From: Blepharisma stoltei ATCC 30299
Taxonomy: Eukaryota > Protista > Ciliophora
Direction: 5' to 3'
Assembly (NCBI GenBank): GCA_965603825.1
Contig: CBFDEM010000030.1
Coordinates: forward strand, 124,001-188,000
DNA length: 64,000 bases
Position numbers and translations under genes: made by a program. Shown here piece after piece: positions 28,305 to 52,331 of this stretch (its first letter is position 1; each line of letters opens with the position of its first letter). The notes under the pieces were generated by a model. That model had not been told where the DNA came from. It did not search any database and saw only the letters and a list, made by a program, of their open reading frames with translations.

Positions 28305-31300
28305 TTAATAACTGCTCTCTTCTTGAAAATTTCCCTCTCTACGATTCTCTTCAGAATTCTTCTCTTCTATGTTTATATTTTCAAGATCTCCCTCCTCAAT
28401 GCTTTTCTTTTCATTTTTGTCTTCATTACTGTCGTTTTCATAATAACTTTCTTCTTTAATTGTCATACATCCTTTCAATTTTTCAAAAAATAAATCCATC
28501 ATGCTGATTTTTTTAAAAGGTATCCCTTGTGAATTTAAATTCTCTTTATGGGAAGTGCTTACGATTAACTCGTAATCTCCTATTATATTTGCTTTGTCCT
28601 CTCGAAAAAAGATTTTAGGGTTTATTATTTTCTTTAAAAATGGAATTTTTTGAATTATTTTGATAATATAGGACTCTCCAGCTGTAATAATCCAGTAAAA
28701 AATAAAATATAAATTTGCTAGAATAATTATAATGAAAAATATGAATTCAGTAAATTTATCAAGAGATTCAGATAAATAATACATTCCACAATAAATTGTT
28801 ATGGCTGAGCATGAAATAGAAATGGCTTCAAGTCTATTTAAGTTATCTCCAATATAAGGCTTTATTTTAAAATGCAAATACAGACAGCTTACTATTACCA
28901 AAAGTGCAGTAAGAGCTTGAATATTGACAGAAACAGTTGATAAGAAGAGAGAACAACAAATAATTAATATTTTTCTGCAAATAATCACAAATTCCCAATA
29001 ATAGCTTCTAGATTTATACCCAATGAATAAAAATCCATATTTGATCCTGACATCAATGCTGCTCAGTCTATGCTTATTTTTTGAGATTAAAAATAAAATA
29101 ATTGCAGGCATTCCAATCCCAAATATAAGAAGAGCTGGAGAAGATATAGCAGCTATGTATAAAATATGCTGGCAATCCCAGCATCTCAAATTCAAATCAT
29201 CTATAAGCCACTCTTTGCCATAGTCAAGTTCCCTACAGTTAAAAGAGCTTAAATAGTACTTAATTATGCTAGGATAGACTAAAAATGCTGCTACAATAGA
29301 AGTGGAAACTAAATTTTCAATAAAAAATTCAAAAGATCGCTTCCATAAATATATCAAAAACCAAAATGTAGCTGAAATAATTGGAATAGAAATAGGCACA
29401 ATAGCTAAAAGGAACAGTTTTTGATAATAAATAATATTGTCTCCTTTAAAGTCTTCATAATAGTATAAAAGACAATCAAAAGAAAATACTTGGTTACTTA
29501 TAAAGCTTGCATTATTTTGGACAGAAAATAATTCTTTCACATAGCTAGGTCAGGATAGACTAAATGTTGTTGTTATTGCTATAAGTTGAATATAATTAAT
29601 CAGTATTTTTATATAAACGCTCGTAAGCAACTTTGGTTTATATGCAGAATTTTTTGAAATTCTGATTATTATACAACAAAGTATAACATATCCCAGACAT
29701 ATTCCGATAGCTTTTACAGTAATTATAGCAAGACTTTGGCATTTTGCACATTGATTTTTTGCTATCTTAGCATACCATTTTTCACAACTCTGGCATAAAT
29801 TTCCAGTGTAACCTTCCTCACAATTCCCTTTATAAGAAATATTTACTGGATCAGAACCAATGCAAGCATTCTTATTAGGACAAGGCCAAAATTTTGTGCT
29901 CATCATTCCAGATCTCCAGTAGCCTGGCTTCGGAGCCATTGTATAATTTCCATAGCACACAGCTTTATTAGGGCAAGTCAAGCATTTATTATTTTTTGGG
30001 TCAAGACTATAAAACTCTTTGGCGCAAACCACACAGTTAACCCCAACAGTTGCTTCACCCAGTACACAATCTCTTAAAGCCACATTTACCGGTATACTTG
30101 CATTATATATTAGTCCATCATTAGCTTTGACACTTTTTGAGGGATCAATGGCATTTGTTTGAATTTCTATAGAAAAATTGCTGCCAGGTTTTGCTGAAAT
30201 TACAAATGAAGAAAAGTTAAAAATACCTTCAGTTGCTATAACTTTAAGCTCGCCTGATAAAAATACATCTTGTGATGTCGATACTAATTCACTGACACTA
30301 GAGTTATCTGTAGTAATAATTGATCCTAAATGATCGACAAGGGCGATAATTAAAGGTGCTATAGTTAACTGCCCTGATGCCAAATCTTTTAGTCCATCAT
30401 CTGAGTTCGTATTTAGAATATCCATATTTACTGGATAAGAAGCAATATTTTTACCATATATTGCTTCATTGTCTTGATATGAATTATTTTTGAATTGCGG
30501 CATGACCTCTTTTCAAACAATTGCTCCTCCTTCATATTCTGCTAAATTTCTGACGAGATCATTAGAAAATATATTAAAACTGCAATTTCCAGAATAGCTG
30601 CAGCCTAATTTTATAGCTCCTCCAATTCCTGACTCATAGCTAGTTTCAGATGATTTTGAAGTTGAAATTGCTTTATTTTCATAAAATTTGCATAATTTTA
30701 TATCAATATTTACATTATCCACAAAAATTGCTCCCCCAACTGATGATGTGCACCTTCTAAATTCATTTGAAACTATTTCATAAGGTTGGCTATTAATAAT
30801 GTCAGAAGTAAATATAAAATATAGAGCACCGCCATATATTGATATATTATTATCAAAAATACAGGAATCAATATAAACATAATCAGTATTTATACAGCTA
30901 ATGACTCCTCCTACCTTCCCTAGGCTATTTTTAAAGCTTGTTTCTCTAATCTCTAAGGTCTCTATTTCTAATCCATCAATCGCAGAATAACTAAAATTTT
31001 CAAAAAAAGATTTTTCAATAAAAATTTTGCTTCCAAAAACACTTATAACTCCTCCAGAGCCTGAACTATAAGAATTTAAAAATTGGCATTGAGAAATATT
31101 TAAAGCTGTAGAAAATGCTAAAATTGTATTCCCAGAAAGTGAAGCTGATTTCAAAAATAAGCAGTCAGTAAGACTCACAGAGCTAGAAAGCGCATAAATT
31201 GATCCACCTGACTTAGAAGATTTTCCATTTGTAAAGCTTGAATTTGTAGCAATTAGTTTACTGTCTGAGGTTAAATGTACAAAACTTCCAGAGTTTCCTT

Positions 31301-34300
31301 CATGGTCTTTAAATTGAGAATTTGAAATAGTAGCATTAGAAAGAGTTAAGTAAATTCCTGGAGTAATCCCACTAGCTGTATTTTCATGTATTTCACAGTT
31401 TTCAATTTGAATATTTGATGTAATTGAATAAACCAAGCCTTCTGACTCTGCATAATTGTAAAATAATAATGAGTTTTTCAAAATACTGTATTCAGCTGAT
31501 CCAATTATATATAAAATTGCACCGTTTTTATAGCAAAAATTTTTATTGAAAATGGAATCTTCAATGAGAAAATAAGACAGCTGGTCAAAGTAAAGGACTC
31601 CTCCGTATTCAGCAGAATTTTTAGTGAATATACATTTACTGCAATAAAAATATGAATTTCCTTCAGCTCTAAATGCACCTGCATAACTTGTTGAAGTGTT
31701 ATTAGTAAATTCTGTTAATTGGCAATCAGCGGATGCAGATAGTGCTAAATAAACAGTTCCTGCATTTGTTGTAGAATTCGCTATAATAGTATTAGTGTCT
31801 TGCCAATAGCCATGGGCAAGATAAATAGCTGACCCCTCATTATTTTGGAATAAACATTTAGCCGATTCAATATAAGAGAAAATTGCAATATTCTCAGAGC
31901 ATAATATATTTTGTCCTGAATTTTCAGTAAAATTGCAGGAGGTTAGGATTATTTTGGATTTATCAGAGCTTGACTGTTCTGAAGCAGCAAAATATAAACC
32001 AGATCCAAGGTCAGCGTGATTAGAAAGAAATACAGAATTTGAAAATTTTAATATTCCAAGTTGGAAAAAAATAGCTATTGTTCCTTTGTTATTAGCAGTA
32101 TTATAAGCGAATATGCAAGAGTCGACAATAGAATTAGTTGATAGAGTTGCATCGTTTTCTATATATATTGCTGAACCGCTTGGCGCTGAGTTATACTGAA
32201 ACTCAGTATCTGTTATCGATAAATTAATATCATCTTGAGACAATGATGTGCCTGATATATAAATCGCTCCCCCTTTTGCATCTCCACTTTTATTTTTCTT
32301 AAAAAACGAATTTTTTATATCAATTGCTCGAGTAAGTAATCCTGTAAAAACTGAGAAATAAAGAGCTCCAAGTCCTGAATTAGCTGTATTTGATTCAAAT
32401 GTAACGTTATTCAACGCTAGCGAGTCACCTCTATAGTAAATACCTGAGCTAAAACTTGCAGAGTTATTATATATCATTGTGTTTTCAATCAAAGTATTTT
32501 CTAAGCTCATATCCAAGCATATTGGTCCAAATCCATGAGAATAACTATTTATATTACTTTTGAATGTTGAATTAATTATTCGGATATTTCGAGTATATGC
32601 CGTATTAAAACATATTCCCTGCGAATAAAGTGCAATATTTTCTTCAAATATACAGCTTGAAATAGTGATATTCCCACAGTAAGAGAAAAAAAATGATGGA
32701 CTTCAAATTTTGCAATCATTTTTTTTGAAAATGCTTTCGGATATTTCATAGTTATATACAAGATTAAAAACTGCTAGATAAATAAATTCTAAGCTAGCTG
32801 GATCAGAAACCATAGTTTTTGGGTATAAAGTATTATCAGATACATAGTAATTTCAAAGAACGGTATTGATATTTTGGGTTTCTGTATTTCCATTAGATTC
32901 TACTGTAATATTAGACATATGCACATTGACTAGATGAATAATATAAAATATTGTATAGCTTCCTGAGTAATTATGTGTAATTATAGAATTTTTAATAATA
33001 AAAGTTCGCTTCTTAAACGTTGCCTCAACAAAATTTCCATTTGTGTCATATATATTTTCATTTGTATCGGTAATATATTGTGAATAAGGATATAATTGAT
33101 TATAAAGGCTAATCAAACTTGCAGATTCAACTCCATTTCCATCCATAACTAAATTTTCGATTAAAATTTTTTGCAGTTGAGACTCATAAATTGCTGTTAA
33201 AATTCCTCCGTATAATCCATAATTGGTTTTAAAAATAGTGTCATGTATGTAAATATGATAAAGCAATAAATCAATCAGCTCATTATTAGAATTTACATCA
33301 TTACGAAACACTAATGCCAGTGGTTCTAAATAAATGAGTCCAAAATTGGCTGAATTTTTTTCAAAAACACACTGAGAAATTTCAATTGATCTGTATAGAA
33401 TCAATTTTATAAGAGAATAAGCAGTGGATGCAATAGAAGGATTATATGCAATATTGTTAACAAAAGTGACATTTTTCAGCTTTACAGTCCTGATTTTATC
33501 TGCACTTAAAAATCCTGAAAACTGTGCTACGCCATACTCATAGCCATTATTAAGCCTTGATACAACTCCATTTGTATACTCAAAGCTTCCACAATTATAA
33601 TTTGCATCTCCACAGTCAAGAAAATAAATCACTGCATTTTTTTCCTGTTCTGGAGTTGCTTGCCCTAGCTGTATTGCAGTCACACCTCACATACATCGAA
33701 TATTATCAAAATTTACGTTGTTGAATATAATATTTGCTCCATAGCTCGTTATTAAAGTTTTTAATTCCATTCTCCAATCTGTAAAATTTACATTTTTCAT
33801 CTCTAAATTAGCACCTAAGTATAAACTAAAGAGACTTTTGGCGTGAAATGTGTTGCATATGGATGAGTCTAAATAATTAGAAACTACAGTCCTTTGATCG
33901 CTGTAATAGTGTCCATCAGAACTTAGCGTAATATAAGCACAGTATGAACAATAAGGATTCGTTTCTGATGGGCAAGTTGATAGAACATCCTGGCCATTGA
34001 ATACAACATTTTTTATTGTAAGAGTAGTAGTACTTGGCACCTTAAAAGTAAAAAAATCGTGGTCTGCCTTCTTTTTTATAGCAATCATAGAGCCATCATA
34101 TGAATCAATCACAAGGTTTTCAAGGCTAAAGCTTTTTGATAAGGGGTCGCAGACATCAGATAATATTGTGCTCACAGGATTTGATGTATTGACACAGGTA
34201 AAATAATGATCCCCATCATTTAATAGATAAATAATGGCATGCCTATTATATATTGAAGCAAGAGCTAGAGAAAGGTATGCAAATGGATTGTTAAAAGTCC

Positions 34301-35666
34301 CATTTCCTTCATAAGCATCGGTGCTTGTTTTTGAAGTTACATAATAGACTGCTGGATTATCTTTTGTTGAATAATCCTTAGGAATCAAACAAACTGGATA
34401 ATTGCCTATCAAATAAACAGCTTGATGGCCACCTGGACAAGAAGCTAAACAAAACCCATAAAATTGATAAGTATTTGAGTTGCATACAAAACAGTCTCCT
34501 AAACTATTAGTATTGCATATTAGACAATTTTGGTCTGCACATGTAATTACTTCACATTGATTTCATGAATAAATGCAATGAGCTCCTTTACAATTTGTGT
34601 GACAAGAACTAGAATCAAGGACCTCTGTTGATAAGCAGTTTGTGCTACTTGTACAGTTATCTGGACTTGCATTTGCTACAAGATTTTTAAATATAAGCCC
34701 ATAATGTAAAGCAAATAATATCTGGTTTGAATTTTGACATTTAGAAGTTTCGCTAATAGTATCATATTTGCACATAGAATTCATGCAGGAATCTTTGCAT
34801 TGTCCATAGCTTTCTATACCGCAGCCTTCAGAGCAGCCACAATCATAATTATCATAATGGCAATCATTTACATTGCAAGCAGAATTACAAACTCCATCTC
34901 CTAGCATAGACATTAAGCAGCCAGGAGCACATTCTTGGCAGTCTCCTCCGTCATAATCGCAATCTGAATTATCACAAACTTCATCACAAACTCCGTTAGA
35001 TTTCATATAAGAATGACAGCCTTTGGAACAGTCACATTCCCCTCCATCTCAGTTACAAGCCAGATTAGCGCACTCTTTATTACAATTATTGTCTCCTATC
35101 ATTCAAAGTTCACAGCCTGAATTGCATTGATTATTATTACAATCTCCAAAATCATAATTACAAGAAGACACATTGCAAGATTTATCACAAATCTCATCCC
35201 CAAGCATTTCCCTGCTGCAGCCAGCTGAGCAATCTTTACAAATTCCTAAACCATAATAACAATTTTCATTATCGCAAGAGCTAGAGCATGCTATGCCTAA
35301 ATCATCTTGAAAACCTAAATATCTTTTACAATCTGAAGAGCAGTACCCACAATCTCCAAAATCATAGCCACAAGTAGGATTATTGCAGTTTTGGTTACAA
35401 ATTCCGTTTCCAAGATCAGAAGGTGAACAAGAATAATTATCAATACACAATCGATAACAATCAGAATTTTCTGGATTTGTCATTGGATTTATAGTTGAAT
35501 TTGAGTCAAAGTTGCAAAATGAAACCATGCATGCTAGATTGCAAACTCCGTCTCCTTTCTAAGTAATAGTTACTGATAATTGAGGGCATCAAGATGGATT
35601 GCATAAGAAGTTTATTGCAATTGAGAATAAAGGCTGGAGTAAAACAAAAAAAAATTTGATACTCAT
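28305..35666 (-). CDS. Receptor-like membrane protein, copy D (~2,443 aa), same architecture as copy A
   Basis: The start reads MSIKFFFVLLQPLFS. The frame is continuous with TGA=W and two 15-nt introns. Confidence 0.88.
35315..35329 (-). other. 15-nt intron (copy D intron 2)
   Basis: GTAAAAGATATTTAG at the homologous position. Confidence 0.8.
35559..35573 (-). other. 15-nt intron (copy D intron 1)
   Basis: GTAACTATTACTTAG with an in-frame TAG. Confidence 0.88.
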
Positions 35667-39939: not shown

Positions 39940-40941
39940 ATGAATACAAGGGCACTATTTTACTTAAAAGAAACTAAAGTATTCTCAACATAGGAGCTTA
40001 CAAAGGCTGTGCTATCTCTGTACAATGCAGGAGTATGTACATTAATGTATTGCCATGGCTGCCCTTCGCCTACTTTACTAAACAGTCTGTCTGTGATGTC
40101 TGGAAGCTGTAAATTTTAAGCAGTTTTGATGGCCTGCTCAACTCAAGCATTAAACCAAGCATATGAAGCTCCTATTGACAAAATAATGACAAGAACTATG
40201 AGAAGGCCAATTCCATCAGGGACAATACCAAGATCTGCAGCAGTTGCGATAGGACTGAGCTTAGGAGGAGCATCTCTAGCATTATTAGCACCTTTAGGAT
40301 ATATGACTCAATTGACAGCGTTAAGTATTTGGAGTGGATATTTGATGATTTACACCCCACTTAAAAGGGTGACGAGATTTAGTACTCATATTGGATCAAT
40401 TGCAGGAGCTGCACCTGTTTATTTAGGATGGGTAGCAGGAACTGGAACATTTTATGGGTTGGATCCGTTTTTAATGGGATTATTTATGGCTGCTTGACAA
40501 TTTCCACACTTTTATGGTATATTGTGGACTTATAAACAGGATTTTCTGAAAGGAGGATATAAAATGATTACAAATGTAGACCCAAATGGAATAAAAACTA
40601 GCAGAGGGAATAAAATTGCTGCTTTAAGCCAATTATTTGCGACTATAGGAATGGGATATACAGGAATGATACACCCACTTTTCGTTCCTGTCGCCATTTG
40701 GTACAACTGGACTCCTGTCAAAGCTGCACTTGAGCATTTTCAAGCTGTAATTTATATATAGTTCCCCAATGCTATGACAGGCCACAAGCTAACTATAGTA
40801 AGCTACCGATTAATAGGAACCCTTTTTCTTGTCCTTTTCGGCACAATAGCATGGAGAAAAGCAATGGAATGGGTAAAAGAAGTAAAAGAAAGGACAGATC
40901 AAGAACACAGGAAATACGAGGACTATAAAGCTTCTAGTTAA
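39940..40941 (+). CDS. COX10: Protoheme IX farnesyltransferase (heme O synthase)
   Basis: Motifs ALNQAYE..D..MTRT.RRPIPSG, YTPLKR, GSIAGA.P..GW and W(TGA)QFPHF. Three 15-nt introns. The start codon is inferred. Confidence 0.92.
39979..39993 (+). other. 15-nt intron (COX10 intron 1)
   Basis: GTATTCTCAACATAG with an in-frame TAG. Confidence 0.82.
40109..40123 (+). other. 15-nt intron (COX10 intron 2)
   Basis: GTAAATTTTAAGCAG with an in-frame TAA. Confidence 0.88.
40747..40761 (+). other. 15-nt intron (COX10 intron 3)
   Basis: GTAATTTATATATAG with an in-frame TAG. Confidence 0.88.
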
Positions 40942-40987
40942 TTTATTTCTTGAAACTAAATTTAAATAGGCCGCTATAAATTATAAA

Positions 40988-43900
40988 ATGTACGGGAAGA
41001 ACCAAGGTGACTACGGAGGAAGACCAGGCTATGAAGCCCCTTACAGAGGCCCAGGCCCTGACGATGATTCTGGATTCAGACGGCAACAAGCGATGGACAG
41101 TTCTACAAGAAATCCAGAAAGGCCGAAATTCGCAAGACAACAAGCTATGAATGAAGTTACTCGAAATCCGCCAGATTTTGATAATAGAGGCCCATCTCAA
41201 GGGAGACCGGACTATGGAAGTCGAGACCCGAGAGGACCTGAAAAACCGTCTGAATTTGGCATGGCTAGAGACCCGTATGACAACAGAAATCCGCCAATAA
41301 GAGATAATAGAGCACCCGCTAACAGTACAAAAGGCTATGATTTAAGAGTGCAGGGACCTGATCCATATGATAATAAACAAGATTATTTGAAGCCTGGCTA
41401 TGAGCCTCAGCCTGGAGGACGAGATGTTTATGATAAAAGACCTGATCCATATGCAAAGCCTAGAGATCCTTATGATGCACAATTTGATAAGCCAGGGCCG
41501 TATGACCAGAAGCCAAGGGATTTTGATAGAAGGCCTGGGGAAAATTATGACACAAGGCAGCCTCCTTATGAGGCAAAAAAACCAGGTTTTGAGAGACAAG
41601 GAGCTATGAATAGGGACCCACAAGGGTATGACCCTTATGCAAAAGATGATCCGAGAGGCCCTAAAAGAGACGATTATGGGGCGAATAGACAAGGACCAGT
41701 TGATGACCGAGGGTTCAAAAGAGATGAGCCAGGGTTTTCTAGACAAGCTGCTATAGAAGATCCAAGAAGAAATGAGCCAGGGTATGGCAGACAAGCACCT
41801 ATAGATCCTAGAAGGGATGACCCATATGCAAGACAGCCTCCTATTGATGACCCTAGAAATCCTAGAAGAGATGATCCATATGGAAGACAAGCCCCTGTTG
41901 ACGACCCAAGAAATCCAAGAAGGGATGATCCATATGCACGAAATCCTACACCAAAAAGAGATGACCCATATGCACGACCTCCTATTGATGACCCTAGAAA
42001 TCCTAGAAGAGATGACCCTTATGCGAGACAAGCTCCTGTTGACGACCCCAGAAATCCTCGAAGGGACGACCCATATGCACGACAGCCTGACCTAAAAAGA
42101 GATGACCCATATGCACGACCTCCTACTGACGATCCTAGAAACCCTAGAAGAGATGACCCTTATGCAAGACAAGCTCCTATTGACGACCCCAGAAATCCTC
42201 GTAGAGATGACCCATATGCACGACCTCCTATTGACGACCCCAGAAATCCTCGTAAAGATGACCCATATGCACGGCCTCCTATTGACGACCGCAAAAATCC
42301 TGATCCTCGCTACGATCCCAAATATCCTCCAAAAGAAGACCCAAGATACCCTCCACCAGACAACCGCAGAGACAACACGCCTTCATCCTATACCAACCGG
42401 CCTCAAGATCCCAGACAACCCCAAGGCTACGATACTCCTAAAGGCCAATATAATGTTCCCAAAGTCGACCCCATCTGAAAAGACAACTGTTATAGAAACA
42501 TCGCCTCAATTATAGAAGAACGAAAAATCAGAATCGATGACGTTTTTTCTCGATATGACCCTCAGAGGACTAATAAAATCCGAATGGCAGATTTCCAGAG
42601 AGGATTAAGCACTATAGCTCCTCGACTTACAGCTGATGAAGCTTTAATGCTTGGTGATGAATATGATGTTAGACATGAAGGATTAGTTAATTATCAGTCA
42701 TTCATTAATGCAGTAGATGCTGCTATTGATAAAAGAAAATCGTATAATCAGACAATTGAGAGATTAGGAAAACATTGTATGGACAAATCGCTGAATTTTG
42801 AAGAAAAACTGAAAGAAGTGGACCCAAGAAATATGAAAAAACTGACAAAAGAGGATTTTCTGGCGTTTTTGAATAGGATTGGGTTTACAATGCCGCCTAT
42901 TGAATCGAATACCTTGATTTCTGAGCTACCGAAGGACAAAGATTTGCTAGATTTGAATGATTTGGTTAGGAGACTTCCAAAGCCAAAAACTACTATAAAT
43001 CTTGAGGCGGTTTTCCAAAAAATAAAGTCATATATACAGTCTCGCAGGATAACTGTTTCTCAAGCTGTCAATGAGTTTGACAAAAACCATGATGGCAGTT
43101 TAAGCCCTTATGAGCTTTCACAAGCGCTAACTCAAATGGGGATCACCGGTTTATCAGCTGACGACATAACACTTGTTGTGCAGGAGCTTGATAAAAATAA
43201 AGATGGAAAAATTTCATTATCTGAGTTCTCAGAAAGAATTGGAATGCCAATTGACCAAATTCAAACGTCAGTCACTCAAGATTTCTTTAGAAAAATTTCA
43301 ACTTTTCTCAAAAATCGTGGCCAAACTTTAATTGAGTTTTTCAAAGAATATGATACTGATAAAAGCAATTCTATTGACAGACATGAATTTGATAGAATGA
43401 TTGCATTAATGAGAATCGAGCTCGACCCTATTGACATAGACCGTCTATTCATTGAAATTGATGTCAACAGGACTGGGAATATCACTTTTATGCAGTTTAT
43501 GAATAAATTTGAAAACATGATCGGAGTTATTGAGAAAAAAGATGAGGCGAATAAAGAAAAAATCAAGCAAGCATTAAAAGGGAAAAAGCCTGGAGAAGTG
43601 TTCAAGCTAGTATATGACCAAGCTGCAGGCGAACAAACCATTCCTTTGCGTGAGTTCAAGCAAGGTCTTGATTTTTTAGGCTGCTATATGACAAAGCAAG
43701 ACTTAGATTATATCGTCCAAGAGTTCGACAAAGGAAAAGGCTATGTCTCCCTCCGCGATTTCGCTCCATATTTTGACCAACCAATTGCTAACCAGCCTCA
43801 AAAAATCGATGTCTCCGCCTATCAATCTCCACCAACCCCTTCCAACAAGCACTGGGCTGAAAAATATTTTTCCCAGATCCGCGACTATGCTACAAGAAAC

Positions 43901-46900
43901 CGCTGCACTATAAGAGAAGCTTTTACCCCATACTGTCCTGACAGAAATGGAAAAATGACAAATGAAGAGCTATCAAATGCTTTAAATATGCTAACTATGG
44001 ACATAAGTGCCCAAGAAATCGACAGACTTGGCAGAGAGCTGAGAAGGGATGGAAGAGTGAGCATTGCTGACATATCAGCCTTGGTAGAAGGCAAAGAAAT
44101 CAATACCTCTGAACAAATAATAGAAGACATGAAAGGCTTTTTTGAAAGGACAGGGAAAAAAATAGAAGAGGTGTTCAGGGTGGATTCTAATGAAAATATA
44201 TACAGACCTGACCTTGTAGAAGGGCTAAAAATTATGAATATCCAAGTAAACCCTAACAGTTTGCTAGATTTGATTCATTTGTTAAATCCAGACGCAAAAG
44301 AGTTAAATATCTCAAATCCAACACTGCAGAAAGTAACAAAAAGAGCTTTGATTAATAAATTAAGACTAAGAGAACCTACTGTCCCTACTTCACCGAAAAT
44401 TTCTGCAAGAAATATTGAAGAAAGGCTGAAAAAAGAAATTTTTGAACATATGGCAGAATTTGTTAACAAAAATTCACTGAATTTGGAAAAAAATGTGTTT
44501 GCGAGGTATGATAAGTATGGAACTAATAGGGTTTCTAGTGACCAGTTCACTGAAATTTGCCATTATTTGACAGAAAGAGCTATATCTCCAGAGCAGCTGA
44601 AATTAATAATTGATGAATTTGACCCTTCAAAGACAGGACAAATCAGCTATCAAGCATTTATAGGGAAAATTGAAGATACAGTGATACAAATTTCATTTGT
44701 GGACAAACTGATACAAAGAATAAAGAATGAGACAGCTGATAAGAGGATTAATTTGCAACAAGTATTTGCAGGGCTTGATCCAAGTACAACAGGGTATGTT
44801 ACATTTGATGATTTTATGAGCGTTTTTACAAGAAACCAGATTACGATTCTTAAAGATGATTTGAGTCGGCTCTGTGCAAGCTTTGATCATGATGCCCAAG
44901 GAAGAATTTCGTATCATGATTTGTTAGGCCGCTTGACAAAGCTTAATGATTCTTATCAAATGACTGGAGGAATGGTAACTCAGTCAACATATGGAACGTC
45001 TGATCCTTATCAAAGGCAAGACCAATATGCAAAAACATATGGGAATGATAACTTGGCAAACCCAAGCCAGAATTTAGCAGCTCCTTATGATCCTCCAAAG
45101 CCTTACCAAGATTACGGAGACCGTAATGCTCCATTGACTAGACAGCAGCCACTTGATAAATTCCAAGCTGATCCTTATAGACCTCAGAATTTCTCAGCTG
45201 GAACTCCAAAAGATGACCCTAGATTTCCATCGCAGACATATGACTCGAGATTTCCAGCTCAAACACCAACACAAAGAGGACCAGATTTAAGATTCCCTAC
45301 ACAGCCTTATGATAATCGATTCCCTGACTCTCGCCCACAAGATCCTCAATTCTCCCAACCTCCTTATCAATCTCAACCAGATCCCAGATATCCTTCCCAA
45401 TCCTCTAATAGAATTCCTCCTCATTGGGCTGATCGTTATTTTGAAATAATCCGTAACTACATGAGCCAAAAACGTCTAAGTATCAAAGACATGTTTACAG
45501 AATTCGACATAGACCGATCCAACTCAATTTCCCCATTTGAGTTTTCCCAAGTTCTCCAAAGAATGGGCGTGCAATTATCTCAGACTGAGCTACAGAATTT
45601 AATGAACGAGCTCGACTCTAATAAAGATGGAAGAATTTCTATAACTGAATTTGAAAGAATTCTTGGAACGAAGACAACTGATGCGTGGGCTGAAGAAGTG
45701 CTAAAAGAGATAAGGGAAGCCGTGAAAATAAGCAGGTCAAATTTAAGAGAGCTGTTTTATAGAGCTGATAGAGATAGGAATAACTTTTTAAGTTACCAAG
45801 AATTTATGGCAGCAATTGTTGATATCTATCCAAGACTTACCCGAAGTGATATGGAAAGATTAGCTAAATACATGGATATTGATAATGATGGAAGAATTTA
45901 TTACCCTGAGTTTACAGCCAAGCTTGAGCAAGAATTTGTAGAGTCAATAAATGCAAAAGTCAGCGACTTTATCAAAGCTAACAACATAAGACTAGATGAA
46001 ATCTTCAGCAGGCTAGACTACACAGGTGACAAATGCATCCACATAAACCAAATGATCCAAGCCCTTGACTCTTTAAGACTTCCTCTTGCTCCAAATGAGC
46101 TTACAGCATTGGTCACAGAAAACTCCTTACATAGAACAAGAGACAATAGACTCAGCTATGTCGATTTAATAGAGCGCGTAACAGCAAAAAAGACTGGGAC
46201 TGACTTAATTTATAGCAAAATTAAAGACGTTTGGGATTTACGATCTCTTAATGTAGAGGAGCACTTTAGACAATATGATCTCTATAATGATTTTACAGCT
46301 TTTCCTAATATTTTATATGAAGCTATATCAAAATCAGGGGCGAATTTAAGCACTGAAGAATATAATCAGCTGCTACAGGCACTGCCTAAAACAAGAGATG
46401 GAAGGATTCCAATGAGGGAACTTATTAATAGGATTGTGGGAGGAGGCTCTGAGTATTCAGTAAATGTGTATCAGAAAATAAGAAGAGCTGCAGAGCTGAA
46501 AAGGGTTAATTTGTTAGACGCGATGAGAGATTATGATACTTATGGAGATAAAATGATATCAAAAGCCCACTTCAAGACTGTTTGTGACTCATCACAAATA
46601 CAAATAGCTGACCGTGAATTAGATGCAATTTGGGCTGATCTCGACAAAACAAAATCTGGGCTTATAAACTATGAAGAGCTTTTCCAAAAAATAGTTCCCC
46701 ACTTAACCAGCCTCCCTCCATCAGCCCCTCGTCTTCCTCCTTCTCAGCAAGCTATGGCTCCTCCACCTCCTCATTGGGCCCAGCAATATCTAAACCAAGT
46801 CAAAGACTACATAAAAACCCGCAACATGACCTTAAAACAAGTTTTCAGTAAATTTGACTCTGATATGAGCAACAGTGTTTCTCCACAAGAATTCCAATAT

Positions 46901-49900
46901 GCAATGCAGTCTATTAATGTAAATATGCCTCCTAAAGAAATGCAAAAACTTATCAATGAGCTGGACATTCACAAGGATGGGGTTATATCATTAACTGAGT
47001 TTGAAGGATTATTCCCTGAGATTGCTCAAGAAGAAAAACATATGACGAGGCTGCTTTTTCAGATTAGGAGCTCAATAGTTACACATAATTTAGATACAAA
47101 AACTATTTTTTCAATGAAAGATAGGGAGTTTCTTGGATATATACAAATTTTTGAGTTTATTGACTGTATAAAGCAAATTTGTCCAGAAATTTCTCCGATT
47201 GATTTAAGGAAGCTTTCAGATAATTTTGGAAAGGAAGGAAAAGTTTATTATAATGAATTTATAAGGAAATTAGATGAAGATAAGGTCGGGATGGTGAACC
47301 TTAAGGTAAGAGAAGCTATAATGTCAAGAAGAATTTCAATGGCCCAAGTCTTTCAGCCATACGACCAAGGTGACCATTATGTGGCAGCACGTGATATTCG
47401 TAGAGCTTTAGACACTTTAAACCTTCCCATCTCTCCAGAAGAGCTTACCTCTCTTGTTCATGATAACAATTTATCTAAAAGTCAAGACGGCCGCTTATCT
47501 CTAAGAGACTTAATTTCTAGAATCGGGATCAGAGAAATCTTGCCAGACCCCAAGCCAACTCTTTCTCAAATTTGTGAAAAAATCCGAAAAGAATGGGACC
47601 AGCTGCGAGTCAACCCTGCCCAAGTTTTCAGTGCATTTGACTATGATGGAGACATGCATTTAACAAAGGCAAATTTCAATCAAGCTTTTATCCACAATAA
47701 TACGCCTTTGAATGCTCAAGAGCTTGATGCTATTTGGGAAGGAATTAATAAGCTTCCTGATGGCAGAGGCTCTGCTCAGCATTTAATTAGTCTCATTATG
47801 AGGCAGGAATCCCCTAATCAGTCTGTTTTTCTAAAAATCGGCTCTATTGCTGAACAAAGAAGAATAAACCTCGGAAATTTGTTTGCTAAATATGACGCAG
47901 ATATGGATAAAAAAATAACAAGGCCAGAGCTTGAAAAAGCACTTATGGAAATCAGGGTTGGGCTCACTGAATTCGAATATCGAGCCATTTTTGCTGAGCT
48001 TGATAGAAATAGAGAAGGAAAAATTTTAATCCCAGAGCTAGTTAGCACTATTATGAAAAAGCCAGTCCCTGTTGATACAATGGAACTGCAATGGGCAGGA
48101 CCAATATTAAACAGAATAAGAGAATCACTTGCAGCTATGAGAATGGACTGCTTACAGTACTTCAGACGCTATAATATAGATCCACAAGGTATGATGAATA
48201 TCAAAGACTTCAGAGATGCTTTATTCAAACTAGGCGTAGACCCTGCATCAATTGAAGGCCAGAGGCTGGTAAACCAATTTTCAATTCAAAATCAAGGAAA
48301 AGCAAATTATGCTGACTTTGAATGGGCAGTCAAAAATATAAGGTCAGTTGGGATCCAGCCACCAGCTCCACAATATAGAATCCTCACACAAACAGCTTTA
48401 GACCATCTTTACCAATGCCTTGATTTCATAGGAGACTGCATTAAAAAAGATTTTGGAAAGGTAGAAAATTTAACTAGAAAAGTAGACCCAAGAAATACAG
48501 GGTTTTTTACCTTTGAAGATCTCAAAAGAATTATTGCCCAGGAGCTGAAGACTCCTTCAGAAGAGGATGTTTTTCAAGGTTTGTGCCTTTTATTGGATGA
48601 TGGGAGCGGGAAAATTCCGAATATTAGGTTTGGAGATGCTGTGTCTGGAGTAAGAATTGAGCAAGTTAAAAAGGACCCAAGAGCAATAAATCAAAGAAAT
48701 TCTCTTCCTGCAGGAGGCATGAATCCAAATACACTTGTACCTCCAAATATGCAACAGCCACCAGGAATGCTGCAAAGAGCTATAACTGCTCAGGGCCCCA
48801 GCCCAGGCCAATTCCAAGTCCAACAAGTATCAGGGACTTTTTCACAAGGTCCTCCAGGAAATCAGCCTCAAAATCCAAGCCTTGTTAAATTTGATATGTT
48901 TTTAAAGCAAAACAATATGACAATAGTAAATCTATTTGGAAGGTCATCAGGAATAATCCTCCGTGACGTTTTCTTGCAATGTCTAAGAAACCAAAACGTT
49001 CCTTTAACACAAGAAGATGTAGAATTCCTCTTAAAAATTTCAGCTGATGCTCAAGATCCTAATAAGACTGATTTAGATAAGCTAAATCAAGCTTTAAGAC
49101 AAACTCAGACAAGGCCTGATATTCGGTCAAATCTCCGGCCACCACAGCCAAATACCCCAAGTCGCCCCCAAATGAATAACTCTAGACAGCAAATGCCATC
49201 AAGCTCAAATCCTACAATTTTAAGATTAAATGACGAGCTGGTTAGAGCAGGACTTTCTGCTGAAGAAGTCTTTGAAAGATACGACATTGACCAAGATGGA
49301 ATTCTCAATAAAGAAGAATTCCTCAAAGCCTGCACTGATTTTGGCTTTAGCGTAGACAGACTTGCTTTGGAAGAAGTTTTCAACCTAATTGATATTTCCA
49401 AAAATGGTCAAATCTCTATCAATGAATTTGCAATGCAAGTTCCTGGAGCACGAATTCAGAATGACCAAAGAGTCCGAAACTTAGACTTAGGCCAGCAATT
49501 TGACGCAGAAATTAATGAGCTTTTTAAGATGCTGGACATTGATAAAGATGGATTTTTGAATTATAATGAAATTACGCAAGGCTTAAAAGCATATTGTATA
49601 GTCCCCAATGGTCAACAGCTTAAAGATATGATGAGAAGAATTGACACAAACCAAAACGGGAAAATCGAATGGCAAGAATTCAAAGGGTTTATGGAAGAAA
49701 TGATAAAGAAAAATATCATGGAACAAGAAGACGAACTTCAAGATATGCGCCAAAAATTTCAGCAAGCTGATTTTATGAAGCTAGGCTACTTAACTACTCC
49801 TCAGCTACTGTCAGTTTTCCAGCAAATGGGCTGCGATATCACAGAAGAAGAGCTTTCTCACCTTGTCGCTCTTGCTGATACAAATCATGATGGAAAAATT

Positions 49901-51457
49901 GATATTGATGAATTTATGCTAATTATGGTTGGCGGAAACCCTGAAGTTTACAATAACGACAAAGCAAGTGCTGTGCTTTTTAATATCAGAAAAGCAAGAA
50001 ATATCAATCCTCTTGATTTTCTTAAAGCATTTTCAGGAATGCCAAAGCATTTTATCCCATCTTTTATAGCAGAAAGACACAAATTAAAGAAAAACTTACC
50101 ATCAACCGGCATAACTCCAGCTTTAGATGCTTCAGGGATCCAATTTAGAGATATCAGCAACACAGTGACTCAGTCTAAGCTCCAGTCAGCTACACATCTA
50201 AAACAAAATGAAATAGAAGCCGGAGGCTATATCATTATGAATAGGGCTTCTGGAATTTCTATCCCAGACGCCTCAATTGTGGCTAGGGCTAATATTTTGC
50301 GCAGGGTTGTAAGAATAGCCTCTTGGCATACTGATAAAATGGATTTCATAGGAAATACTTGTCATGTAGAAGCTCAATGGCGTGAAGATATAGAAGACAG
50401 ATGGGCTTTTGAGCTTCCCCAAGACAAAGAATACAACTTTATAGCTGCCAGAATCGGAAAAGGCTATGACCCCTCAAAGGTATTTTTAATCTTTGAATTT
50501 ATCATCATAATGCTAAAAGACCAAAATTCAGTAGAATTTTCCTGTGGGTTTTCACAGATTTCCTACCAAAATTTAATGCTGAGAACTGACCATAGAATTC
50601 CTATACAAGGAGGCAGCCCAGGAAATCTGCAAGAAGTGTCGACTGAAGATATAAGGACTTATAGGAAAGGATGGAGACATTTGTTGAAAATGACAGGGCT
50701 GAGCTCGGTAAGGTCTGAATTAATGCTAGAATTTAGACAGTTTAGAAGACTAAATATACCAGAACAAGGGTTATTGGAAAGTCTTCCTAATGTATGTGTA
50801 GCAAATAAAGGAGGGCTACAGATGATAAATATATATAGAGAATATGTCGCAAACTTGTTTTCACAGAAAACTGGACAGGATTTTATACTCCCCAACGTAG
50901 CTGATCCATTTTTGACACAGTTCCCAAGGATAATGGATTGCCCTGATACCTGGATGCCACTTATGCAGCACTGGAATAGTGTGGAGTTTAATAGAGCTAT
51001 GGGAGCTGCAAGAGATTTGAGCCAATATCATATACAATTGATAAACCTTGTGAAGAAGCTGTATACCATAATAAAAACTGAAGAATTTGCTGTAGATGAT
51101 TATCAATCTACAAAATTCTCTTATGGAATTGTGACTAACAGAGTTGAGCTATACTCGAAGCGGCAAGAACTTGTATGGAAAGCTATTAGAGGGGAGCCTG
51201 ATAAGCAAGCAGCTTATAATTATAAACCTTTTGATGTGGTAGAACTGTCATCAAAGACGCTAATAGATATTGATTTTATTGCAAGCAGAAAAATCAGAAA
51301 TATGTCAAGAGGAGGTCTTCAAGATAGCAGAGGACTGAATCGGTCTATGCAAGAGCTCGGGAAGAGATCGACTGCTCAAGATGGGCTAAGTCAACAGACA
51401 CCAACTGGTGGGCAAGGAGACACCAGGCTGCAAAGATCAAGAGTATCATTTAAATAA
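40988..51457 (+). CDS. Giant 3,489-aa protein: Pro/Arg/Asp/Tyr-rich repeats, ~40 EF-hand-like motifs, C-terminal nephrocystin-1 (NPHP1)-like domain
   Basis: Track ORFs 40988-42478 and 42584-51457 join in frame through one TGA. EF loops include DKNHDGSLSPYE, DSNKDGRISITE and DTNHDGKIDIDE. NPHP1-type motifs lie at ~50220-51000. Confidence 0.88.
41760..42300 (+). repeat. Coding tandem repeat DDPRNPRRDDPYARQ(A/P)P(I/V), ~16-18 aa units with shorter variants
   Basis: The repeats are visible at both DNA and protein level. Confidence 0.92.
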
Positions 51458-51749
51458 CTAAAATTATTAATTATAGTAGCAAAAGAAATATGTTGCTCAG
51501 CTATATATAGTTATTTCGGAAAGTTATTATAAGCATCTCCCAGGATATGGACTTTATTAAAAGTATAAGTTAAATCCATAAAAAATACTTACAATTAACG
51601 AGAGCCAATAAACCAAAAATTTGCTTTTCTTGTTTCAGAAAATAATATCTCTCCATAATTGCAATGCTTTAGCAATTGATAATCCAGGTGGAGAATAAAT
51701 ATATTTTCTTCATAAATAGTAGAATAATTTCATATTAATTTATTAAATT

Positions 51750-52331
51750 TTATTCGTTATCCTTAATACCTTTGGTGAAAATTTGAGATCGCTCAATAAA
51801 ATTAGAGTTTTCTTTAAGCATCTTTATGACTTTATCATGAGACTCTACGAGTATTATCATTTTGAGAAGTGTCGGATAATTCTTCTTGGATTCTTTAAGA
51901 GATGTCAGTACATTTTCAAAAACATAAGCACTTATTGCAAATCCTTTATCTACAGCATCCTTAGCGAACGTATTTGCATACTCAGAATTTTCGAAGAAGA
52001 CATCAATAGCTGCCTTCTTTGTTTTTCTATCAGTGTTTGCTACATTGATAGCGACTTTTCCAATTGCGATTGGGTCTTCAACAAAATTCTTTATATCGAC
52101 TGAAGGTATGCTCGTTTTAGGAAAATGCTTTCCTCGGTGTTCTTTGGAAATAAAGTAGGTTTTATTTTTACAGTCGATTGTGATCCTTGAAGGACACTTC
52201 GAATGCGAACATTTGAAGTAGATTCTATCTTTGTATGAACTACTTCAGTAATAAATATAGTTATCCATAAAATATGAAGTTGAATTATGGAATATATACA
52301 TTTTGACCTTTTTAGCATATTTAATTTTCAT
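51750..52331 (-). CDS. FLYWCH/WRKY-GCM1-like zinc-finger protein (~172-193 aa), absent from the ORF track
   Basis: With TGA=W it reads MDNYIYYWSSSYKDRIYFKCSHSKCPSRITIDCKNKTYFISKEHRGKH (C-x4-C...H-x3-H), open to TAA 51750-51752. Possible starts are 52331 and 52268. Confidence 0.6.

Follow-up and report, generated by a model that had tools for sequence, protein, structure and literature searches.

A very long gene lies on the forward strand of the 64,000-nucleotide stretch of contig CBFDEM010000030.1 of Blepharisma stoltei ATCC 30299 analysed here (the window, to whose first letter all positions refer unless stated otherwise). The open reading frame (ORF) at 40988-51457 comprises 3,489 codons and a terminal TAA, and encodes a giant protein with a repeat-rich disordered head, a long array of EF-hands and a C-terminal nephrocystin-1 (NPHP1) homology domain. 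No other long frame was found on either strand across this region. The somatic genome of the strain was described previously as 41 Mbp with 66% AT in 64 telomere-to-telomere sequences, with UGA read as Trp and introns of 15-16 bp (PMC9942806). The assembly used here consisted of 41,464,486 bases in 64 contigs.

The frame contains one internal TGA, at codon 497, and translation with the bacterial table divides the region into two ORFs of the same frame (40988-42478 and 42584-51457). In five giant relatives (P0004, P0005, P0007, P0008 and P0158) this codon aligned with an invariant Trp, the alignment extending to both sides, so UGA is read as Trp in this gene. The same Trp opens the later super-repeats described below (residues 956, 1480, 1930 and 2369). 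The gene uses 18 TGG, 1 TGA, 153 CAA and 66 CAG codons and has no in-frame TAA or TAG before the terminal stop, which excludes the ciliate code in which TAA and TAG specify Gln. With UGA as Trp, the frame is by orthologue alignment continuous from 40988 to 51457, in agreement with an earlier note on this DNA, made from the letters alone, which had described a 3,489-aa ORF.

Other treatments of the TGA were considered. A true stop separating two genes (40988-42478 and 42584-51457) was rejected on the basis of the conserved Trp and the alignment running through it. A tiny intron covering the codon was rejected as well, no GT..AG 15/16-mer spanning the TGA. Only one 15-nt GTA..TAG candidate occurs in the gene (44515); it falls within the loop of an EF-hand, such candidates are no more frequent than chance predicts, and it was discarded. 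No credible 15/16-nt intron was found in the giant gene.

The C-terminal domain was searched with phmmer (HMMER) against 1.8 billion representative proteins, giving 252 relatives; a word-indexed protein search returned just three. Pfam assigned no family to the last 518 residues, a model of the NPHP1 domain not being in the library used. The C-terminus had no sequence match in the PDB, where the phmmer relative P0133 matched generic SH3 domains only. P0133 (E = 6.7e-9), a 688-residue protein of Chromosphaera perkinsii, an ichthyosporean, carries an SH3 domain ahead of the matching region; its C-terminal part matched a 'nephrocystin-1-like' protein of the sponge Oscarella (E = 1.7e-65) and other SH3 proteins.

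Profiles were compared with hhalign. A profile of 21 protist domains aligned with a profile of five opisthokont NPHP1 proteins over 368 columns (probability 100%, E = 1.6e-41), from an L-P-S...D motif before the C2 region through the terminal K-P-F motif. The eight C-terminal motifs that the earlier note had quoted as resembling NPHP1 are all present in the translation, in the order given, and have counterparts in the opisthokont consensus. In a language-model feature search, chordate SH3/nephrocystin-1-like clusters ranked first.

A model of the domain was built with AlphaFold (AF2) on an alignment of 45 sequences, with a predicted local distance difference test score (pLDDT) of 86.8 and a predicted template-modelling score (pTM) of 0.88; a single-sequence AlphaFold model had a pLDDT of 29 and was discarded. 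In the retained model, helices follow a beta-sandwich. The ESM Atlas representative that it matched best was a chordate 'NPHP1 protein (Fragment)', with a template-modelling (TM) score of 0.76 over 352 residues and a root-mean-square deviation of 3.3, a comparison of one predicted model with another, as the PDB holds no solved NPHP1-domain structure. The profile and structure comparisons proposed in the earlier note thus both returned NPHP1. Among PDB structures the sandwich matched the C2 domains of Aida and PI3K, which agrees with the published description of an 'NPHP1-C2 + alpha-helical domain' (PMC3495828). Sequence, profile and predicted fold thus agree in showing a genuine NPHP1 homology domain at the C-terminus. 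The globular region placed by the earlier note at about 50220-51200 falls within the domain as delimited here, 50081-51268. One NPHP1-domain locus, this gene, was found in the 41.46 Mb of the genome.

Neither an SH3 domain (Pfam) nor an N-terminal coiled coil was found in the giant protein. The coiled coil and SH3 define an opisthokont subgroup and not the NPHP1 family, since the N-terminus varies between clades (PMC3495828).

The EF-hands occupy residues 497-2990. Pfam detected EF-hand_7 (E = 7.9e-151, with 13 independently significant pair stretches), EF-hand_1 (E = 1.1e-87) and several further EF-hand models. A hidden Markov model (HMM) iterated on the protein itself gave 24 hands at iE<0.01 and 11 weak ones, 35 in all, and 14 loops satisfied the canonical Ca2+-binding pattern PROSITE PS00018. 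When helix-loop-helix units were counted by homology between blocks, degenerate partners included, the total was about 40-48. The totals vary with the threshold, and about 35-45 was taken as the working estimate; the figure of roughly 40 hands in 20 pairs given by the earlier note is a fair one. By profile and canonical loop the array is a member of the EF-hand Ca2+-binding family, and Ca2+ binding itself is predicted.

The hands are grouped in super-repeats of ~430-450 residues, some of which are parted by P/Q-rich linkers. Blocks C (1477-1903) and D (1927-2356) are 31% identical (E = 1e-63); A, B, E and F are remoter copies. For most canonical loops, positions 1, 3, 5 and 12 are kept in the orthologues although the EF blocks are only 26-51% identical, which argues for selection on Ca2+ binding. 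The earlier note had read the protein as an NPHP1-like module tied to a very large Ca2+-binding array. The ORF, the Pfam matches and the profiles all bear this out, the two parts being covalently joined in one ciliate protein devoid of SH3.

The features of the gene are listed in Table 1. The head (residues 1-496) is composed of 20% P, 17% D and 15% R; this composition, with the 51/54-nt tandem repeats at 41798-42301, accords with the repeat-rich disordered N-terminus reported in the earlier note. Its length differs between orthologues, and P0007 and P0008 have almost none of it.

Table 1. Features of the giant gene and its product, in window positions.
Feature	Positions	Strand	Basis or remark
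Complete intronless coding sequence	40988..51457	+	~402 kDa, pI 6.2, calculated
Disordered P/D/R/Y-rich N-terminus, residues 1-496	40988..42475	+	Composition; no Pfam match
Tandem 51/54-nt (17-18 aa) repeats, DDPY...DPRNP motif	41798..42301	+	Tandem Repeats Finder, matches up to 88%
In-frame TGA = Trp, residue 497, first residue of EF super-repeat A	42476..42478	+	Orthologue alignment
EF-hand super-repeat A, residues 497-955	42476..43852	+	Pfam, HMM, self-comparison
EF-hand super-repeat B, residues 956-1325	43853..44962	+	HMM, self-comparison
P/Q/D-rich linker, residues 1326-1479	44963..45424	+	Composition
EF-hand super-repeat C, residues 1480-1905, ~10 hands	45425..46702	+	HMM, self-comparison
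EF-hand super-repeat D, residues 1930-2368, tandem duplicate of C	46775..48091	+	HMM, self-comparison
Partial EF-hand super-repeat E, residues 2369-2560	48092..48667	+	HMM, self-comparison
Q/P/N-rich linker, residues 2561-2745	48668..49222	+	Composition
Proximal EF-hand cluster F, residues 2746-2990, 5 canonical Ca2+ loops	49223..49957	+	Pfam, PROSITE, HMM
Conserved junction between last EF-hand and NPHP1 domain, residues 2991-3031	49958..50080	+	Collinear with Percolomonas P0102
Nephrocystin-1 homology domain, residues 3032-3427	50081..51268	+	HMMER, hhalign, AlphaFold model
C2-like beta-sandwich part, model residues ~20-215	50153..50740	+	AlphaFold model; Aida C2 and PI3K C2 matches
Alpha-helical part, model residues ~221-400	50756..51295	+	AlphaFold model
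Basic R/S/G/Q-rich tail, residues 3428-3489, weakly conserved	51269..51454	+	Composition, orthologue alignment

Collinear giants with blocks A-F and the NPHP1 domain were found in four protein clusters, P0004 (2,828 residues), P0005 (3,474), P0007 (2,959; from the MMETSP transcriptome of Climacostomum virens) and P0008 (3,332). Compared with the Blepharisma protein, their EF blocks are 21-51% identical and their NPHP1 domains 35-53%, conservation being highest across the junction and the NPHP1 domain. P0004 is without most of super-repeat C (172 of 426 positions aligned, residues 1480-1905), so close relatives differ in how many EF blocks they have. Two further entries, P0001 and P0002, are consecutive pieces of one orthologue: P0001 takes over from P0002 where the NPHP1 domain begins. 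Automatic gene calling thus sometimes splits the orthologue.

A quick maximum-likelihood tree of the NPHP1 domain was computed with support from the Shimodaira-Hasegawa-like approximate likelihood-ratio test (SH-aLRT); P0025, P0027, P0064 and P0110, whose NPHP1 domains are cut short, were excluded. The Blepharisma protein, P0004, P0005, P0007 and P0008 formed a clade (100% SH-aLRT), and the SH3 proteins a separate one (99%). Remoter giant forms with many EF-hands are P0212 (3,025 residues), P0025, P0027 and P0064. Many homologues of 1,200-2,100 residues carry only two or three EF pairs beside the domain, and small forms of 600-830 residues exist too; in these distant homologues the hands were counted with Pfam, since the HMM trained on the giant protein under-counts there. 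One cluster (P0029, 81 members) contains proteins of ~1,620-1,630 residues with an NPHP1 domain and few EF-hands, each on a contig of ~5.0-5.2 kb. In appearance, these contigs are candidate nanochromosomes of spirotrich ciliates with one gene each.

In one BLASTP alignment (E = 2e-30), the giant protein is collinear from its fourth-last EF-hand through the junction and across the NPHP1 domain with P0102, a 748-residue protein of the heterolobosean Percolomonas. The last four hands of cluster F are part of an ancestral core common to small protist NPHP1 proteins. By this alignment, ciliate and heterolobosean have in common an old core of four EF-hands, junction and NPHP1 domain, which suggests that the NPHP1 domain may have been joined to EF-hands before it was joined to SH3. 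Internal duplication added the giant array N-terminally; the array is new and common to the heterotrich clade (2,828-3,474 residues, the Climacostomum transcript included).

The surroundings of the gene were also inspected. The G+C content of window positions 40001-52000 is 0.35-0.42, compared with 0.27-0.35 in the remaining window, and the AT skew there is strongly positive; both probably reflect the P/D/R-rich coding composition. Upstream, on the opposite strand, 28305-35558 (-) is a very long open frame of 2,417 codons with eight in-frame TGA. On the forward strand at 40120-40928, two overlapping frames (40120-40761 and 40614-40928) end 60 bases upstream of the start codon of the giant gene and have the look of a single gene interrupted by a small intron or a frame change.

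Other transition-zone genes were sought by profile search, and the genome was found to carry genes with RPGRIP1L-type C2 and B9 domains. An RPGRIP1L/NPHP8 homologue at G000:C56:114326-120520 (+), equivalent to L004:2326-8520, has 2,064 codons with two in-frame TGA and encodes an RPGRIP1-type first C2 domain (PF11618, 108 bits), a second C2 domain and, at the C-terminus, a long run of EF-hands (EF-hand_7, 66 + 159 bits). Among the matches of block C outside its own protein, the hands of this homologue rank with the best. The RPGRIP1L homologues of Blepharisma and Paramecium both bear EF-hands, those of Blepharisma being more numerous. In animals, NPHP4 is the direct partner of NPHP1.

Fusion of EF-hands to an NPHP1 domain had been described in 2012 by Zhang & Aravind, who noted N-terminal EF-hands in the NPHP1 proteins of some eukaryotes in place of the animal SH3 and proposed that these forms respond to Ca2+ (PMC3495828). 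The possible novelty raised in the earlier note therefore applies in part: the type of fusion, exemplified by the 748-residue Percolomonas protein, is not new, and what is new and unusual is the roughly ten-fold enlargement of the array. Full-text literature searches found no paper in which NPHP1 is linked with heterotrichs or a giant form with EF-hands is described. EF-hand plus NPHP1 appears to be a widespread protist architecture.

The experimental transition-zone literature has overlooked the ciliate homologues. In two surveys in wide use, NPHP1 was considered to be confined to opisthokonts by Barker et al. (PMC4092220) and was listed as absent from Paramecium in Table 1 of Gogendeau et al. 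2020 (PMC7093003); it was not among the proteins tagged in a stochastic optical reconstruction microscopy (STORM) study of Tetrahymena (PMC8041816). Residues ~830-1131 of P0146, a Paramecium primaurelia protein of 1,190 residues (CAD8094172.1), aligned with the opisthokont NPHP1 profile over 226 columns (hhalign probability 97.4%, E = 1e-11). The database annotation of P0146 is just 'EF-hand domain-containing protein'.

Against the observed continuity of the gene, its domain identities and single copy, its collinear orthologues and the conservation of its Ca2+ ligands, several explanations were set. One of them, an artefact of the gene model in which an EF-hand gene and a small NPHP1-like gene happen to be neighbours in one frame, could draw on the database fragments that divide the orthologue, P0002 ending where P0001 begins. 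It is very unlikely: 2,992 stop-free codons run across the junction, the junction is conserved from ciliates to Percolomonas, and a transcriptome ORF (P0007, 2,959 residues) and a Trinity transcript (P0064) each cover array and NPHP1 domain. The explanation that we favour, and consider probable, is a single intronless heterotrich gene for the only NPHP1 homologue of the genome, equipped with a giant EF-hand arm and belonging to an NPHP module that responds to Ca2+. By homology, the C-terminal ~400 residues (C2-like sandwich and helical domain) would be the part that places animal NPHP1 in the NPHP1-4-8 module. In animals the site of this module is the ciliary transition zone, adjoining the membrane, and from its family the giant protein would be expected to dock there. 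In the heterotrich lineage the core would have been extended N-terminally by repeated duplication of a unit of ~430-450 residues (~five EF-hand pairs), leading to about 35-45 hands, 14 of them with a full canonical Ca2+ loop, and a disordered head of variable length would have been gained too. The protein may share the transition zone or basal body with the EF-hand-bearing RPGRIP1L, and Ca2+ binding could alter the shape or the partners of the long arm. In these large ciliates the NPHP module would then respond to Ca2+, for instance during gating or in what follows Ca2+ influx at the base of the cilium. We infer the transition-zone role and the Ca2+ sensing from homology, and likewise any connection with basal bodies or cortical fibres, which the earlier note had put forward as possible.

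Three considerations weigh against this explanation. Paramecium RPGRIP1L deprived of its EF-hands showed unchanged localisation and deciliation response (PMC7093003), which speaks against taking a sensor role for granted. By the HMM trained on the giant protein, roughly half of its EF-hands are degenerate, and much of the array may be structural instead of Ca2+-binding. Animal-type interactions through SH3 or the coiled coil cannot apply to the giant protein, because those parts are not present. In another explanation the array would be mainly a passive spacer or ruler of largely degenerate pairs, without Ca2+ regulation, on an ordinary NPHP1 with a long arm; this would fit a canonical loop in just 14 of ~35-45 hands and the dispensability of the Paramecium hands in the functions assayed (PMC7093003), but the Ca2+ ligands of the canonical loops are conserved across orthologues whose EF blocks are only 26-51% identical, and we regard a mainly passive array as quite improbable. 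The NPHP1-domain protein of heterotrichs might instead have been re-purposed as a Ca2+-binding scaffold of the cortex or of fibres (contractile or post-ciliary fibres of such huge cells, for example) and not serve as a transition-zone gate. The grouping of the 2,800-3,500-residue forms in a heterotrich-like clade, other ciliate-like homologues having two or three EF-hand pairs, is in keeping with such a change, and the long disordered head and P/Q-rich linkers fit an extended, fibre-like molecule. With a sole NPHP1-domain gene in the genome, however, either loss or sharing of the ancestral role would be required; conservation is highest in the junction and the NPHP1 domain (35-53% identity); a second protein of the NPHP module, RPGRIP1L, bears EF-hands in the same genome; and remoter giants (P0212, P0025, P0027 and P0064) occur outside the clade. 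A re-purposed scaffold is thus judged unlikely. The favoured Ca2+-responsive module may also be taken further, to a form that we put forward as doubtful: heterotrich NPHP1 would be a Ca2+-driven arm of ~400 kDa, its C2/helical end anchored beside the membrane in the transition-zone NPHP module and its ~20 EF pairs changing length or partners on Ca2+ entry at the base of the cilium, so that together with the EF-hand RPGRIP1L the gate, or the shedding or anchoring of cilia, would be under direct Ca2+ control; the ancestral eukaryotic NPHP1 would have been an EF-hand protein and the animal SH3 form derived.

Ciliates probably possess a fuller NPHP module than experimental studies have allowed for, because the Blepharisma genome encodes NPHP1 and a Paramecium protein carries an NPHP1 domain, contrary to PMC4092220 and PMC7093003. 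The ten-fold heterotrich expansion, beside an EF-hand RPGRIP1L, provides a defined system in which a direct action of Ca2+ on the transition zone could be examined. RNA interference has been used in another ciliate, Stentor (PMC4019465). The interest is moderate, since the basic EF-hand/NPHP1 fusion has been known since 2012, and there is no direct bearing on human disease.

The protein can be compared with four known systems. Animal and other opisthokont NPHP1 proteins (coiled coil, SH3 and nephrocystin homology domain) share with it the entire homology domain, the C2-like sandwich and the helical part being homologous, and the E-x-SCGW and GG-x-P blocks are common to both. The Blepharisma protein differs in having ~2,500 residues of EF-hands and a head of ~500 disordered residues where these have SH3 and coiled coil, and it is about five times longer than the opisthokont proteins compared (544-715 residues). 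The protist proteins with EF-hands and NPHP1-C2, such as Percolomonas P0102, have the same order of EF-hands, conserved junction and NPHP1 domain, but carry about four EF-hands, whereas the Blepharisma protein has ~35-45 in duplicated super-repeats and a repeat-rich head. Paramecium RPGRIP1L/NPHP8 (PMC7093003) is likewise an EF-hand-bearing member of the NPHP1-4-8 module of a ciliate; it belongs to another family (coiled coil and RPGRIP1-type C2), and its EF-hands are C-terminal and form a much shorter array. Multi-EF-hand proteins of the calmodulin/centrin type are likewise built of helix-loop-helix pairs with canonical Ca2+ loops of 12 residues. They are free small sensors, whereas the hands of the Blepharisma protein are covalently joined in ~20 pairs that end in a C2/helical module.

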